Virus record (IMG/VR): IMGVR_UViG_3300044640_001495
Coordinates: 62,001 to 126,000 of that record
Strand: one strand, 5' to 3'
Length of the DNA: 64,000 bases
How positions within the stretch are numbered: position 1 is the first letter of the stretch; each line of letters opens with the position of its first letter. The notes under the pieces are model-generated. The model was given only the letters and a program-made list of their open reading frames with translations. It was not told where the DNA came from and ran no database searches. Positions 1 through 4,591 of this stretch are shown here, piece by piece. The position numbers and the translations under genes are program-made.

Positions 1-32
1 AGTATAAACTCAACGAAGGTAAGTAAAATATT

Positions 33-107
33 GGGCTGTTGGTATAGATGGGAACACAGTAGCTTTGCAAGCTTCAATCCCCGGTTCGATCCCGGGACGG
101 TCCACCA
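33..107 (+). tRNA. tRNA-Ala(UGC)
   Basis: Cloverleaf: acceptor GGGCUGU/ACGGUCC with the G3.U70 Ala determinant, anticodon loop UU-UGC-AA, T loop UUCGAUC, encoded CCA. Confidence 0.93.
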
Positions 108-124
108 AGTTTTAAGTAAGTATT

Positions 125-198
125 GCCCCTTTAGTATAATGGTATTACACCTGTTTTGTAATCAGGTTACGGCAGTTCGATTCTGTCAAGGGGCACCA
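125..198 (+). tRNA. tRNA-Thr(UGU)
   Basis: Acceptor GCCCCUU/AAGGGGC, anticodon loop UU-UGU-AA, GUUCGAUUC T arm, ACCA end. Confidence 0.93.
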
Positions 199-212
199 TT
201 TTTTAGGTACAT

Positions 213-830
213 ATGAAATTTGCATATTTTAATCCAACTGTGATGGCTGTGGCCGATGTGCCGGCGGATGTATTCACCAATTTGAAAAGTCTAGTAGATA
301 CTGCACATACCAAGACAGAACTCAATGATGAGGGTAATCCTGCTATTAGCATACGTGGCGGACAGCAGATTCAACTCTTGCCAAATCAATTCAATCTAGA
401 CACAGGGCATATCAAACGCTATGTAGAAGCGCAGTGCCAGGAATACATGGATGCGCAGATCAAACAAAGCGGTCGCAACGATCTGTCAGCATTTCAACCC
501 ATGTTGGTTTCAGCATGGACTATACGTCAGACTGCAGGCGACTATCAGGCCATGCACAATCATGAAGCACATATCAGCGGCAACATCTACATTGATGTTC
601 CTGATCTTGATCTCACAGACAACATATCGGATGCTGTGATTGAGTTTAGATTGCCGGTGGTAAGAAACCCTGCACATTTTGTTTTTGTAGATCAATGGCG
701 GTTTACCCCAAATCCCATGAAGATGATCATATTTCCCAGCTATATTCCACACACTGTGTATCCGTGGAAAGGCAAGGGCCACAGAACAATTTTGGCTTGG
801 GATGTGAAATTAGTGGCAAAAAAGACTTGA
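213..830 (+). CDS. Putative 2OG-Fe(II) oxygenase (TIGR02466-like)
   Basis: HNH-x-x-x-ISG-x-x-Y motif and C-terminal FPSYIPHTVYP...R pattern typical of phage 2OG-Fe(II) oxygenases. Confidence 0.7.
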   Translation: MKFAYFNPTVMAVADVPADVFTNLKSLVDTAHTKTELNDEGNPAISIRGGQQIQLLPNQFNLDTGHIKRYVEAQCQEYMDAQIKQSGRNDLSAFQPMLVSAWTIRQTAGDYQAMHNHEAHISGNIYIDVPDLDLTDNISDAVIEFRLPVVRNPAHFVFVDQWRFTPNPMKMIIFPSYIPHTVYPWKGKGHRTILAWDVKLVAKKT

Positions 831-855
831 CATTTAGTCTAAAGAGTGCTATAAT
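827..855 (+). promoter_or_regulatory. Consensus sigma70 promoter
   Basis: TTGACA(827-832)-17 nt-TATAAT(850-855). Confidence 0.85.
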
Positions 856-878
856 AGTTTTGTTGTGTAGCAATACAT

Positions 879-1117
879 GACCGGTAAAGCGAAGGGTAGA
901 TGAGAATAGACACAAAGGTGTGAGCTTCATGCTTACTCCAAACTTACAACCATCTGAACAATGGCCGTGTTTATGTGATCCGATCCCTAATAGAATGTCA
1001 TTTGTTAATCGGAAATATATGGACCTCTGTGTATTGTATTTTGCACATTGTCAACGAAGACTACAACTCTTCATTGTATATTGTCCGGTCTATTACTTGA
1101 CCTTTCGTTGACCCGTT
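879..1117 (+). ncRNA. Candidate structured RNA or long 5' leader upstream of rpoZ
   Basis: Long-range complementary segments 888-897/1100-1109, 905-911/1088-1094 and 910-919/1023-1032 plus internal hairpins; lies just downstream of a consensus promoter; family not recognised. Confidence 0.55.
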
Positions 1118-1138
1118 ATTTTTAACCTAAAGGAATAT

Positions 1139-1387
1139 ATGAACAAACAACTTTCATCAGAAGACGCAGTGGCAGCATACGGCGATAGATTTGAAATGGT
1201 ATTGGCTGCAAGTCAACGAGCTCGAGAGTTGAAAAACGGTCATGCTCCTAGAGTTGATAAAGGTAGTCATGGATTTATTGTTACTGCTCTAAACGAAATC
1301 GAACAGGGCAAGTATACTAGACTTGATTTTTTAAAAACTGTTAAAACAAAGAAGAAAGGACAACGTGATGAACATTTCCCTACGTAA
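1139..1387 (+). CDS. rpoZ: RNA polymerase omega subunit homolog
   Basis: DRFEMVLAASQRAREL matches the omega core motif; strong SD (AAGGA) upstream; about 82 aa. Confidence 0.75.
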   Translation: MNKQLSSEDAVAAYGDRFEMVLAASQRARELKNGHAPRVDKGSHGFIVTALNEIEQGKYTRLDFLKTVKTKKKGQRDEHFPT

Positions 1388-1940
1388 GGCAAACGCAGTT
1401 CAGAATTCGATCAATGAAGCAATCAAGGGTATTAAGATTGATACCAGCATTGAGATCAACGAGTTCCAGAACGCACAAGATGAGATTCAAAAGGCCAATA
1501 ACCTTTTGATCACAAATGATGGTCGCCGACAAAAGCTGTTGTTGGCCTTGTACAACATTCGCGGACTGGTTGGTACAGCCAACGCAAATTGCGGAATTGA
1601 CCTGTCATTGGCCAAGGCTGCGTTCATTGACAAGCGTGTCACACAGTTGACTGAAATAGCCACATTGAATCCAGTGAGTGACTTGGCTGTGGTCAACGGC
1701 AAGTTGGACAAGATCCGCAGCCGCAAAGAAGAAAGCCGTGCAAGTTTGTACGGCCGTGACGACACGGTATCTACCAGTGTTGTTGGACGAGATCAAATTG
1801 ATCAAGCCAAGGCAGAGATCCAAAATCTCAAGAAGCAGAAACAAAAACTCAATGATGAAGTTCTTGAGTTAAATATCAAAACTGAAATTCCACTCAGTGA
1901 TGATGTTGTAGCAACACTGCAAGCTGAAGGCTTGATCTAA
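1365..1940 (+). CDS. Hypothetical phage protein (coiled-coil rich)
   Basis: 191-aa ORF with upstream AAGGA SD and codon usage consistent with neighbours. Confidence 0.75.
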   Translation: MMNISLRKANAVQNSINEAIKGIKIDTSIEINEFQNAQDEIQKANNLLITNDGRRQKLLLALYNIRGLVGTANANCGIDLSLAKAAFIDKRVTQLTEIATLNPVSDLAVVNGKLDKIRSRKEESRASLYGRDDTVSTSVVGRDQIDQAKAEIQNLKKQKQKLNDEVLELNIKTEIPLSDDVVATLQAEGLI

Positions 1941-1942
1941 CA

Positions 1943-2148
1943 GACCCCGGGCGCCCTTGCCCGTTATACAAAGGGGGTGGGGCAGTCACCATAAAGAGTG
2001 CTAGGTTTGTAGTGCAAAGGCCTTCCGATCCTGTGTAGGGAATCCGGAGACGCATTAGGTGAGGTTTAACACCTTCCCATAAGAATAAATGTTATGGACA
2101 GAGTAACCGCTCAGTCTAGGGCTCCTGTGGTGGGAGTAGCTAGGCACT
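1943..2148 (+). ncRNA. Candidate multi-branched structured RNA
   Basis: GC-rich intergenic stretch with no ORF; closing stem 1997-2004/2140-2148 encloses hairpins at about 2022-2049, 2057-2074, 2077-2097, 2097-2116 and 2122-2136. Confidence 0.55.
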
Positions 2149-2154
2149 AATTAT

Positions 2155-2230
2155 CGCGGGATGGAGAAGGTGGTATCTCGGAAGTCTCATAAGCTTCAGA
2201 TCGTCGGTTCGACTCCGACTCCCGCAACCA
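2155..2230 (+). tRNA. tRNA-Met(CAU), initiator-like acceptor (C1.A72)
   Basis: Acceptor CGCGGGA/UCCCGCA, anticodon loop CU-CAU-AA, GGUUCGACUCC T arm, ACCA end. Confidence 0.92.
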
Positions 2231-2240
2231 ATTTGAGGAC

Positions 2241-2993
2241 ATGATGTTTTTATTTCGAAGAAAAAAGATAATTGTAGATTGTTTTATAGATAATCCAGTT
2301 GTGCAGAATCTGTTCAAAATTGATCATGCTCATAAATTTGTTCCCGCAGAGTGGAAACAATTGCCACCTATGGTTGATGTAAAATCACTGCAGGATCCTA
2401 GAAGCAAGGAATTAATTCCAATACCAACAGCCAAGAGATGTGTTGGTATGGTCAATTTGTTTACCTCTGGATTTATACTACCTAGTTGGACAGATTTTAA
2501 AATTGAAATGATGAAGGACGGATTATTTTTTAAACATGATCCTATGGGCGGCCTAGATGCCAATCCCCATCCTCCCTTTATGTATTGGGAAGAATTGTAC
2601 AAGGGATACCAGCATGTGAAAATTTCTAGTCCTTGGTTAATCAAAGAAAAAACTGGTGTTAAATTTGCCTGGAATCAATGTACCTATCACAATACAGATA
2701 GACATGCTAACTACCATGCGTTATCGGGAATATTAGATTTTAAAGCACAGCATAATACACATGTGAATATTTTTGTGAAAAAGGGAACTACACTAACGGT
2801 TAATGCAGGTGATCCGTTGGTACAGCTTATCCCGTTAACTGAACGTGAAGTAGAATTAAAACATCATGAAGTTGATGCTAACGAGTACGAAAAGATTTCA
2901 AAAGAGTTTACTCAAAAATCTATGTGGGGAGGGCAACATAGATCATTATTAACTTCAATGCCCGCATCAAAATGTCCGTTTGGATTCAAATGA
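2241..2993 (+). CDS. Hypothetical phage protein
   Basis: 250-aa ORF with GAGG SD upstream; no diagnostic motif recognised. Confidence 0.75.
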   Translation: MMFLFRRKKIIVDCFIDNPVVQNLFKIDHAHKFVPAEWKQLPPMVDVKSLQDPRSKELIPIPTAKRCVGMVNLFTSGFILPSWTDFKIEMMKDGLFFKHDPMGGLDANPHPPFMYWEELYKGYQHVKISSPWLIKEKTGVKFAWNQCTYHNTDRHANYHALSGILDFKAQHNTHVNIFVKKGTTLTVNAGDPLVQLIPLTEREVELKHHEVDANEYEKISKEFTQKSMWGGQHRSLLTSMPASKCPFGFK

Positions 2994-3139
2994 AATTATA
3001 CGAAGCAACAATTAGAGTAGACGGCAAAGAATTTAAGGATCGTGTGGGTGCTAATTCGGCAGAGGAAGCACGTATGTTATTACAACAGAGACACGGTCCC
3101 AGAGCAGTACCATATGTTCCTCATATGATACCAAGTTAA
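2990..3139 (+). CDS. Small hypothetical protein (49 aa, MKLYEATIRVDGKEFKDRV...)
   Basis: ATG overlaps the previous stop (ATGA coupling) and the ORF fills the gap to tRNA-Pro; below the ORF-track length cut-off. Confidence 0.6.
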   Translation: MKLYEATIRVDGKEFKDRVGANSAEEARMLLQQRHGPRAVPYVPHMIPS

Positions 3140-3142
3140 TTT

Positions 3143-3219
3143 CGGAGTGTGGCGCAGTCTGGTAGCGCACCTGGTTTGGGACCAGGGGGTCCAAGGTTCG
3201 AATCCTTGTACTCCGACCA
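3143..3219 (+). tRNA. tRNA-Pro(UGG)
   Basis: CGGAGUG...UACUCCG acceptor, anticodon loop UU-UGG-GA, T arm GGUUCGAAUCC, ACCA end. Confidence 0.95.
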
Positions 3220-3239
3220 TTTTTTAAAAAGAGAAAACA

Positions 3240-3428
3240 ATGACTAAAGACGAATACGAAGCAGCTACAGCCACAGCCATGGCAGAGTTCCTGGCCAAGG
3301 GTGGTGTGATACAACAGATCGAAAGAAATGTCAGCAGCAGAGAAGAAGGAGCCAGTTATTCATCATGGTCTAAGAAAAAACCTTCAACTTCACCTTTGGC
3401 CAATCCTCCAGAGGATCACGAAACTTGA
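3240..3428 (+). CDS. Hypothetical protein
   Basis: 62-aa ORF between tRNAs; AEFLAKGGVIQQI pattern recalls small phage proteins. Confidence 0.6.
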   Translation: MTKDEYEAATATAMAEFLAKGGVIQQIERNVSSREEGASYSSWSKKKPSTSPLANPPEDHET

Positions 3429-3445
3429 TTGTTAAATAATAGTAT

Positions 3446-3519
3446 GCGGGGTTAGTTTAATGGTAAAACAGCAGATTTCCAATCTTCGGTCGAGAGTTCG
3501 ATTCTCTCACTCCGCTCCA
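3446..3519 (+). tRNA. tRNA-Gly(UCC)
   Basis: GCGGGGU/ACUCCGC acceptor, U73, anticodon loop UU-UCC-AA, CCA end. Confidence 0.92.
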
Positions 3520-3527
3520 AGGATATA

Positions 3528-4100
3528 ATGAAAGTAATAGATCAAAACGAAGTATTTCGCAAGTTTAATTTCAGTTCAGTAATTACACAATCTGACAATG
3601 AAGAAGCCATAGGCATTATAAAAGCAATCATTGCTGACGGGAATTACTTTACTAATAGTCCCAAATATCAAACTAAAGAAAATATATTTGCTAGACCCGA
3701 AGCTGTATGGTTAAAGTATCGTATGAGTTTTTTGTTCAGTGTATTCATGTACCTAGGACGTGAAGTAAAAGTTAATAACATGATGGCTTGGTCGTTTATG
3801 ACCAATCTTGAGAGTGCCGAGGATCGTGAAAATCTGTGGCATCATCACTGGCATCCTACTCATGACACTGCCAAAATGTTGAGTGGTGTTTTGTATCTGC
3901 ACATACCCGATGATGTTAAAGATTACGATTACTGTGGTACAGAAATGGCTCCTAACGGGCCAGCAGGTGACGGCAAGTTGTTTGTAAAACCTAGTGAATA
4001 CGCATGGTTGATCTATCCCAGTGATCAGTGGCACAGGCCGGGTGTTGTACAAAGCAATCAGTATCGTTTTATATTGGCAGCAGATATAGAATATGTTTAA
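3528..4100 (+). CDS. Putative 2OG-Fe(II) oxygenase-like protein
   Basis: WHHHWH...LSGVLYLH...WHRPG...R pattern. Confidence 0.55.
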   Translation: MKVIDQNEVFRKFNFSSVITQSDNEEAIGIIKAIIADGNYFTNSPKYQTKENIFARPEAVWLKYRMSFLFSVFMYLGREVKVNNMMAWSFMTNLESAEDRENLWHHHWHPTHDTAKMLSGVLYLHIPDDVKDYDYCGTEMAPNGPAGDGKLFVKPSEYAWLIYPSDQWHRPGVVQSNQYRFILAADIEYV

Positions 4101-4101
4101 T

Positions 4102-4175
4102 GCGGGATTAGTTTAATGGTCAAACGAAACCTTGCCAAGGTTTAGTCAGGAGTTCGATTCTCCTATCCCGCTCCA
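4102..4175 (+). tRNA. tRNA-Gly(GCC)
   Basis: GCGGGAU/AUCCCGC acceptor, AAACC-UUGCCAA-GGUUU anticodon arm, UCCA end. Confidence 0.95.
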
Positions 4176-4180
4176 AATTT

Positions 4181-4255
4181 CCGGCCATAGTATAATGGAT
4201 AATACAAAGAGCTTCTACCTCTTGAATGTGGGTTCGATTCCTGCTGGCCGGACCA
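4181..4255 (+). tRNA. tRNA-Arg(UCU)
   Basis: CCGGCCA/UGGCCGG acceptor, AAGAG-CUUCUAC-CUCUU anticodon arm, ACCA end. Confidence 0.93.
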
Positions 4256-4256
4256 C

Positions 4257-4330
4257 GCTCTTGTAGTAAAATGGTATTACACAGTCTTGGTAAGACTGAA
4301 TTCCAAGTTCAATTCTTGGCTAGAGCACCA
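4257..4330 (+). tRNA. tRNA-Thr(GGU)
   Basis: GCUCUUG/CUAGAGC acceptor, CAGUC-UUGGUAA-GACUG anticodon arm, ACCA end. Confidence 0.92.
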
Positions 4331-4331
4331 C

Positions 4332-4360
4332 TTGACAAATTGAAAGAAAGACAGTATAAT
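4332..4360 (+). promoter_or_regulatory. Consensus sigma70 promoter
   Basis: TTGACA(4332-4337)-17 nt-TATAAT(4355-4360). Confidence 0.85.
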
Positions 4361-4366
4361 AGTCGT

Positions 4367-4591
4367 ATGTACAAAGTAATAGAAAAACAAAGCTCAACGG
4401 AGTTTGCTAATTTGGATTTAGCAATGGCATTTGCCAAAGAATTAAATGTGTTCGTTACCATCCAAGGTGGCGAATTTGAAATCGTAGGAGTATTTGGTGT
4501 AGACAGCATCAAAGATGGTAAGTGTCCAGATGGCGTTAAATACGATTGGAACAAAGCGAGCCGAATTGGCCGCGTTAAAAAGGAAAGATAA
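4367..4591 (+). CDS. Hypothetical phage protein (start refined to MYKVIEK)
   Basis: ATG just downstream of the promoter; the longer ORF-track start lies inside tRNA genes. Confidence 0.7.
   Translation: MYKVIEKQSSTEFANLDLAMAFAKELNVFVTIQGGEFEIVGVFGVDSIKDGKCPDGVKYDWNKASRIGRVKKER

Follow-up and report, generated by a model that had tools for sequence, protein, structure and literature searches.

The stretch between a perfect sigma-70-type promoter and an rpoZ-like gene in a freshwater jumbo phage raises the question of whether it encodes a structured RNA and, if so, whether this RNA has anything to do with RNA polymerase. The locus lies in a window of 64,000 nucleotides, the whole stretch of DNA that was analyzed, which belongs to an IMG/VR virus record of 353,123 bp (IMGVR_UViG_3300044640_001495; estimated 98% complete). 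A preliminary description had proposed a branched RNA without a recognizable family, acting either as a stand-alone ncRNA or as a regulatory leader, with a 6S-like or omega-linked role suggested only by its position. The RNA itself is real, whereas its interpretation is only partly supported: a stand-alone ncRNA is borne out, but the link to RNA polymerase or omega is not.

The promoter (827–855, + strand) comprises TTGACA (827–832), a 17-nt spacer, and TATAAT (850–855), with 12 of 12 matches and an extended −10 TG (848–849), and predicts a transcription start near 859–862. A consensus-like promoter is present at the same distance in nearly all homologous loci. The conserved element (859–1118, + strand) is followed by an ORF of 82 aa (1139–1387, + strand), which is a genuine omega/Rpb6 homolog (Pfam RNA_pol_Rpb6, E 7e-12). 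The + strand of 862–1138 folds at −74.1 kcal/mol with z −3.68 (0 of 200 shuffles as good), whereas the − strand yields only z −1.55. The comparison with Rfam, which had been named beforehand as a check, returned no family of Rfam 15 (including 6S, tmRNA, RNase P, SRP, riboswitches, GOLLD, and ROOL) over 700–1300, neither at gathering score nor at E up to 10, except for three chance hits at 6.7–12.9 bits; ARAGORN found no tmRNA. Nucleotide similarity to cultured phages is restricted to tRNA genes, and the 22-nt 3′ motif has no exact match among 185,579 prokaryote genomes, which provides no evidence for host or prophage copies.

Homologous loci were first collected via the omega protein, and all 23 carried a homologous element of ~260 nt behind a consensus-like promoter. 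Two DNA motif scans of IMG/VR, one anchored in the 3′ part and one in the 5′ part, and a covariance model (R1) then yielded 132 hits in phage contigs, which include 86 distinct full-length sequences; the element in the window scores 278.9 bits and represents the only copy in its genome. An eight-helix structure was evaluated on a MAFFT alignment of 82 distinct sequences. Standard pairs occupy 96.1% of the pair cells, against 29–43% when the 3′ partners are slid by 1–3 columns; 37 of 57 pairs show changes on both sides, and none of 500 column shuffles reaches any of the five measures. Protein-level conservation of the 63-aa ORF at 920–1111, which would have refuted a non-coding nature, was not found: its length modulo 3 is random among homologs (32/30/20), its start codon is not conserved, and the frame remains open in only 10 of 82 sequences. 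The stretch up to the rpoZ-like ORF contains no conserved ORF.

The fold (all features on the + strand) begins with a 5′ hairpin (P1, 862–881), in which 7 of 8 pairs show changes on both sides. A long closing stem consists of P2a (882–884/1113–1115), P2b (889–897/1100–1108), and P2c (901–911/1088–1099), with an invariant AGA bulge at 898–900; 97–99.9% of its cells are paired, with compensatory changes in P2b. The 3′ strands of this stem (1088–1115) include an invariant CUUGAC, which remains conserved also when members are collected through the 5′ motif only. The stem carries a junction with P1 and three arms: hairpin P3 (917–939), in which all 7 counted pairs show changes on both sides; hairpin P4 (950–964; CCAU/AUGG) with a conserved 7-nt loop, C-U-(U)-G-A-A-N-A, in which all 5 pairs covary; and P5, comprising P5a (969–977/1016–1024) and P5b (980–984/1008–1012). 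Most pairs of P5a are changed compensatorily in one outlying homolog (L141). An optional hairpin (P6, 1056–1072; stem 1056–1060/1068–1072) folds in 74 of the 76 members that carry the insert.

Two of the three long-range pairings in the preliminary description (888–897/1100–1109, corresponding to P2b, and 905–911/1088–1094, part of P2c) and two of its three hairpins (CCAT/ATGG at 950–953/961–964 and CCGAT/ATCGG at 980–984/1008–1012) are conserved with compensatory changes. By contrast, the third long-range helix (910–919/1023–1032) is not supported, because the canonical fraction per pair ranges from 0.02 to 0.98, 917–939 forms its own covarying hairpin, and 1025–1032 begins a single-stranded tract. 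The hairpin TACAA/TTGTA is not supported either, as four of its five pairs are canonical in only 4–31% of the sequences; the real hairpin in this region is P6. A competing hairpin between the 3′ strand of P5a and the first heptad of the adjacent tract (CAGGC/GCCUG) is complementary in only one subclade, whereas P5a itself covaries in the outliers. An all-against-all covariation scan for pseudoknots was dominated by the split into two subclades and revealed no extra helix. A kink-turn (box C/D-like) at AGAUGAG/CUUGAC, which would require a 3-nt bulge followed by tandem sheared G-A pairs, does not fit, because the positions after the AGA bulge behave as Watson-Crick or wobble pairs (G902 pairs with U1098 and changes to G-C in a distant homolog, L164) and the GA/AG register does not fit. 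An internal promoter (TTGACC-17-TATAAT) spanning the 3′ end is strong in only 15 of 73 contexts and does not explain the invariant CUUGAC.

The most conspicuous feature is the single-stranded tract between P5 and the 3′ strand of the closing stem, in which UG recurs at an exact period of 7 nt. The first part of the array (1025–1052) comprises UG at 1028–1029, 1035–1036, 1042–1043, and 1049–1050; the second part (1074–1087), which follows P6, comprises UG at 1075–1076 and 1082–1083 and ends in the conserved UUGUCCGG. All six are invariant in all 82 sequences (492 of 492 cells), whereas the other positions of the heptad (consensus N-W-Y-U-G-Y-N) drift. Two further UG with the same spacing are located in the loop of P5 (996–997 and 1003–1004). 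Six members lack P6 and have exactly four nucleotides in its place, which maintains the register and results in six uninterrupted heptads. Runs of six UG at period 7 were reached by 0 of 2000 shuffles in each of seven sequences tested, whereas the run of four in the window was reached by 11 of 2000. No partner strand for the tract emerged from the covariation scan.

Whether the RNA is expressed was examined in metatranscriptomes. Twenty-one runs from lakes or freshwater, and three runs of unstated kind, contain part of the stretch, and assembled contigs of six of them were mapped onto the window. In three runs (X2, X10, and X12), the depth over ~880–1119 reaches 2,000–48,000 but falls to 27, 0, and 0 from 1120 onward and is 11, 0, and 0 before 835. 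In a fourth run (X3), it is 745–1,016 over the element and 0–8 over rpoZ and the first part of the following ORF, although contigs with a depth of several hundred occur further along that ORF. In X1, the depth rises only to about 90, against 17–42 on the flanks, and X4 has almost nothing on the element. The depths are word depths of contigs pooled over related strains and lack strand information, and some contig ends reflect strain variation rather than RNA ends, but the flanking genes provide an internal control against carry-over of DNA. Read ends had also been proposed as a test, and Illumina adapter sequence is assembled directly onto positions 891 (X3), 1112 (X10), and 1113 (X3), which requires many fragments ending there. 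The abundant species spans at least ~880–1119 and accumulates as a discrete RNA of about 225–260 nt, at a depth 100- to 1000-fold above that of the neighboring genes. Its 3′ end lies just before the Shine-Dalgarno sequence of the next gene; because the U-run that follows in the window is not conserved, the end is probably generated by processing or inefficient termination.

The association with rpoZ is incidental. Among 114 loci with at least 900 nt of downstream sequence, a homolog of the ORF at 1365–1940 (+ strand; ORF191, 190–191 aa) follows the RNA in all 114, whereas rpoZ is located between them in 47, after ORF191 in 6, and is absent within 3.5 kb in 61. ORF191 is a well-conserved family; a profile search of a library of 1.84 billion proteins found 1,586 clusters (at 50% identity) with E 0.001 or better. 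The AlphaFold2 model is confident (pLDDT 90) and predicts an all-helical hairpin bundle without a recognizable RNA-binding domain. ORF191 has no Pfam, PHROG-function, or PDB-sequence relative; structure searches (Foldseek against PDB, AFDB, and BFVD; VIA-align; ESM Atlas) returned only generic coiled coils and uncharacterized proteins of large phages, including CcrColossus, and of giant viruses, and the best solved match (3kdq, Z 10.7) has no known function.

The pair is conserved across deep divergence and in both gene orders. In contigs of distant ORF191 representatives, R1 with filters off detects the RNA upstream of the gene in L167 (E 7e-16) but immediately downstream in L164–L166 (L164, E 4e-15) and in L163 (E 5e-4). 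A tblastn search identified ORF191 homologs in cultured jumbo phages of the Dolichocephalovirinae, namely the Caulobacter phages CcrColossus and CcrPW and seven Brevundimonas phages. In all five that were examined, the gene is followed by an unannotated gap of ~285–315 nt, and a broader model restricted to the 3′ half (R2) hits this gap in CcrColossus (E 0.001) and CcrPW (E 0.003). Both carry six UUG at period 7, ending in UUGUCC followed by AG in CcrColossus and CG in CcrPW, which is the same arrangement as in the window; the same terminal motif as in the window, UUGUCCAG, occurs in CcrColossus. The gaps in the three Brevundimonas phages carry five or six UG, mostly within GUG, at period 7 in the same position, but neither covariance model reaches them, and their assignment rests on position and heptads only. 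In these lineages, the RNA starts right after the stop codon of ORF191 and must therefore be co-transcribed and cut out. The ORF of ~81 aa after the RNA in the cultured phages is not a hidden omega but an acidic protein without an Rpb6 match.

The analysis thus shows a stable, abundant, structured RNA that is co-transcribed with ORF191 in every lineage and carries a strictly periodic, single-stranded array of an invariant dinucleotide; that the RNA and the ORF191 product form a ribonucleoprotein is inferred from gene linkage across deep divergence and in either gene order, and that several protein copies bind is inferred from the strict period. In this reading, which is favored only tentatively, the RNA of a T4-like freshwater jumbo phage would be transcribed by the host sigma-70 holoenzyme from its own promoter, the folded core would position the RNA, and the heptad array would be a platform on which protein copies bind in 7-nt register, either around an oligomer or along a short filament, with rpoZ as an optional passenger of the operon. 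A period that is kept while the spacers vary, and that is restored exactly when P6 is absent, is expected of a repeated protein footprint but not of a base-pairing seed. ORF191 also has many invariant basic residues (R6, K7, R65, K89, K115, and K158). However, there is no direct evidence of RNA–protein contact, as binding was not assayed and no structure of the complex was predicted, and because the RNA is 100–1000 times more abundant than the ORF191 mRNA, most copies could be protein-free or bound to something else. What the particle does for the phage is unknown. A further possibility, slightly more tentative, is that the folded RNA body presents six UG sites in strict 7-nt register and so dictates the assembly of a defined oligomer of the helical protein, which would make the pair a new class of phage ribonucleoprotein, shared by large tailed phages from T4-like freshwater jumbo phages to the Caulobacter and Brevundimonas Dolichocephalovirinae, with a role in host takeover or phage RNA metabolism.

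Among the alternatives, a sponge or decoy survives best but is unlikely. The array might titrate an abundant host single-strand RNA-binding protein with a footprint of about 7 nt, such as cold-shock-domain (CSD) proteins or the OB domains of ribosomal protein S1, and so reprogram host RNA metabolism during infection, with ORF191 merely co-expressed. The large excess of the RNA over neighboring mRNAs and the six to eight identical short motifs in a single-stranded tract would be in agreement with this view; bacterial cold-shock domains contact about 6–7 nt and prefer U-rich or AUUG-like sequences, and the genome of the window encodes a CSD protein. However, a sponge does not explain the strict linkage to ORF191 in every lineage and in both gene orders, a CSD protein is absent from the five cultured phages, the genome of the window has no gene for Hfq, S1, HutP, or TRAP, and there are no binding data.

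A trans-acting RNA that pairs with C/A-rich regions of host or phage mRNAs in the manner of GcvB, with the structured body providing stability, is improbable. The tract is an accessible, G/U-rich single strand between stable helices, and the RNA is highly abundant and has its own strong promoter. However, a pairing seed does not need an exact 7-nt period with variable spacers, and because only UG and its flanking pyrimidines are fixed while the four other positions drift, any fixed complementary target would be destroyed. Targets were not sought.

A cis-regulatory leader or autoregulatory operator, in which ORF191 or a metabolite would control translation or termination of the rpoZ/ORF191 operon, is not excluded but equally improbable as the main role. 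In the clade of the window, the element ends 19–27 nt before the next start codon, with only a Shine-Dalgarno sequence in between; a U-run follows the closing stem in the window, and the 100- to 1000-fold drop in depth at ~1120 could reflect regulated termination. By contrast, the RNA lies downstream of ORF191 in L163, L164–L166, CcrColossus, and CcrPW, the U-run is not conserved, the only candidate for an alternative terminator/antiterminator pairing exists in a single subclade, no riboswitch family matches, and accumulation as a discrete stable species goes beyond what a leader needs. An RNA directed at RNA polymerase, be it a 6S- or Ms1-like decoy or a partner of the phage omega subunit, is very unlikely despite its abundance and its position next to an rpoZ-like gene in the window and in 47 of 114 loci, because rpoZ is absent from most loci and from all distant lineages examined, the fold is multi-branched without a long rod or central bubble, and no 6S or Ms1 model matches even at E 10, although binding of the holoenzyme and templating of product RNA were not assayed.

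The array recalls the TRAP- and HutP-binding leaders of Bacillus, in which GAG/UAG triplets are bound by ring oligomers: a short invariant motif repeats at a fixed period in single-stranded RNA while the spacers vary, and HutP sites are UAG triplets with 4-nt spacers, which amounts to the same 7-nt period. However, the motif is UG (Y-U-G-Y) rather than NAG, the array is part of a large, folded, stable RNA rather than an attenuator, no terminator/antiterminator switch was found, TRAP (PF02081) and HutP (PF09021) are absent from the 353-kb genome, and ORF191 matches neither family and is all-helical, unlike either protein. Sponge RNAs of the CsrB/RsmZ type are also abundant and present many copies of a short protein-binding motif, but their GGA motifs lie in hairpin loops at irregular spacing, and no Csr/Rsm model matches. 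GOLLD and ROOL are ornate structured RNAs of unknown function that are often phage-borne and lie near tRNA genes; they are much larger (about 500–800 nt), without a match here, and apparently lack a heptad array and a dedicated protein neighbor. Type III toxin–antitoxin loci share the layout of a strong promoter, a repetitive RNA, and a gene for a protein of ~190 aa, with the RNA in large excess over the protein mRNA. However, ToxI is a tandem array of ~36-nt units cut by ToxN, whereas the present RNA is a single folded body with 7-nt micro-repeats and no long tandem unit, and no ToxN/AbiEii-like Pfam match was found for ORF191 (no ToxN-like hit among 38 members).

No description of the RNA was found in the literature searched; a catalog of 8,495 candidate structured RNAs from IMG/VR (PMC10690425), whose entries were not compared, may contain fragments of it without characterizing it. 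The RNA and its pairing with ORF191 are therefore treated as a new class, although the working principle of a repeat array used as a protein platform has precedents. Orphan structured RNAs of this size and conservation are rare, and several have later proved to be new ribozymes, riboswitches, or ribonucleoprotein scaffolds. The present one is among the deepest contigs on this stretch in four independent lake metatranscriptomes and is thus not merely predicted, it is widespread, and its exact heptad spacing makes a sharp prediction about how it is bound. Because the family reaches cultured phages of the genetically tractable Caulobacter, the function of both the RNA and the unknown protein is directly testable. 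It also corrects the attractive but wrong inference of a necessary link to the phage omega subunit.

The stable RNAs rnaC and rnaD (species 1 and 2) of phage T4 are obvious analogs, as they are small RNAs of unknown function encoded among the tRNA genes of a T4-type phage, but they measure only 139 and 119 nt, and neither R1 nor R2 matches them with filters off (the best hit in the T4 tRNA region, 7.1 bits, E 0.27, is inside tRNA-Ser). The neighboring T4 protein e.6 (197 aa) is not a homolog of ORF191 (hhalign probability 0.4). The RNA of the window is likewise located in a phage tRNA island, with eight tRNA genes in the first 4.4 kb and genes for 2OG-Fe(II) oxygenases in the surroundings, and later ORFs match T4-type baseplate and tail-fiber families.

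A second conserved non-coding element starts right after the stop codon of ORF191, the gene that accompanies the UG-heptad RNA, and ends just before tRNA-Met (window 1941-2154; tRNA-Met at 2155-2230). The element occurs at the same place in at least 57 related loci, with visibly compensatory hairpin variants, and reaches depths of about 500-1,500 in the lake metatranscriptomes X2 and X3, with adapter-joined ends near positions 1978 and 2115. It has no match in Rfam, and its single-sequence fold is unremarkable (z -0.25). Because it carries no UG heptads, it is a different RNA. Some loci lack this element, and in these a tRNA follows ORF191 directly.

The surrounding region (window 1-4400) is a tRNA island with eight tRNA genes (Ala, Thr, Met, Pro, two Gly, Arg, and Thr), which are interleaved with small ORFs and two genes encoding 2OG-Fe(II) oxygenases. 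Three perfect sigma-70 promoters, each with 12 of 12 matches, are located at positions 827, 4332, and 4855, so the phage appears to rely on the host holoenzyme in this region. A further promoter may be present in some relatives. Within window 1097-1125 and at the equivalent place in the related loci L013, L017-L021, and L029, the invariant CUUGAC in the 3' strand of the UG-heptad RNA doubles as a -35-like hexamer. In 15 of 73 distinct contexts, a TATAAT with 5 of 6 or 6 of 6 matches lies 16-18 nt downstream, and some relatives may therefore possess a second promoter for the downstream genes inside the RNA gene. In the window, the hexamer at the 17-nt spacing is TTTTAA.

One relative has a 58-nt internal direct duplication within the UG-heptad RNA, which repeats the loop of the P5 arm through the first heptads (L022:2655-2974 and L038:2322-2641, two loci that represent the same IMG/VR contig). 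This is either an assembly artefact or a natural variant with extra heptads. The phage to which the window belongs encodes a cold-shock-domain protein (Pfam CSD, E 8e-31) outside the window (G000:C1:24710-24901 of its own genome), which is relevant only as a possible binder of the heptad array. The five cultured relatives that carry the RNA have no CSD gene.

In CcrColossus and the Brevundimonas phages, the RNA gap is always followed by a conserved, strongly acidic ORF of about 81 aa without any match in Pfam (L162:3879-4124, L169:2363-2608, and L170:2411-2659 in the loci of these phages), which could represent a further member of the module in that lineage. The predicted-structure relatives of ORF191 (window 1365-1940) include not only proteins of Vibrio and Erwinia jumbo phages but also proteins of the giant eukaryotic viruses Catovirus and Yasminevirus (TM 0.6, E about 1e-5). 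The fold is therefore much more widespread than the RNA found so far.
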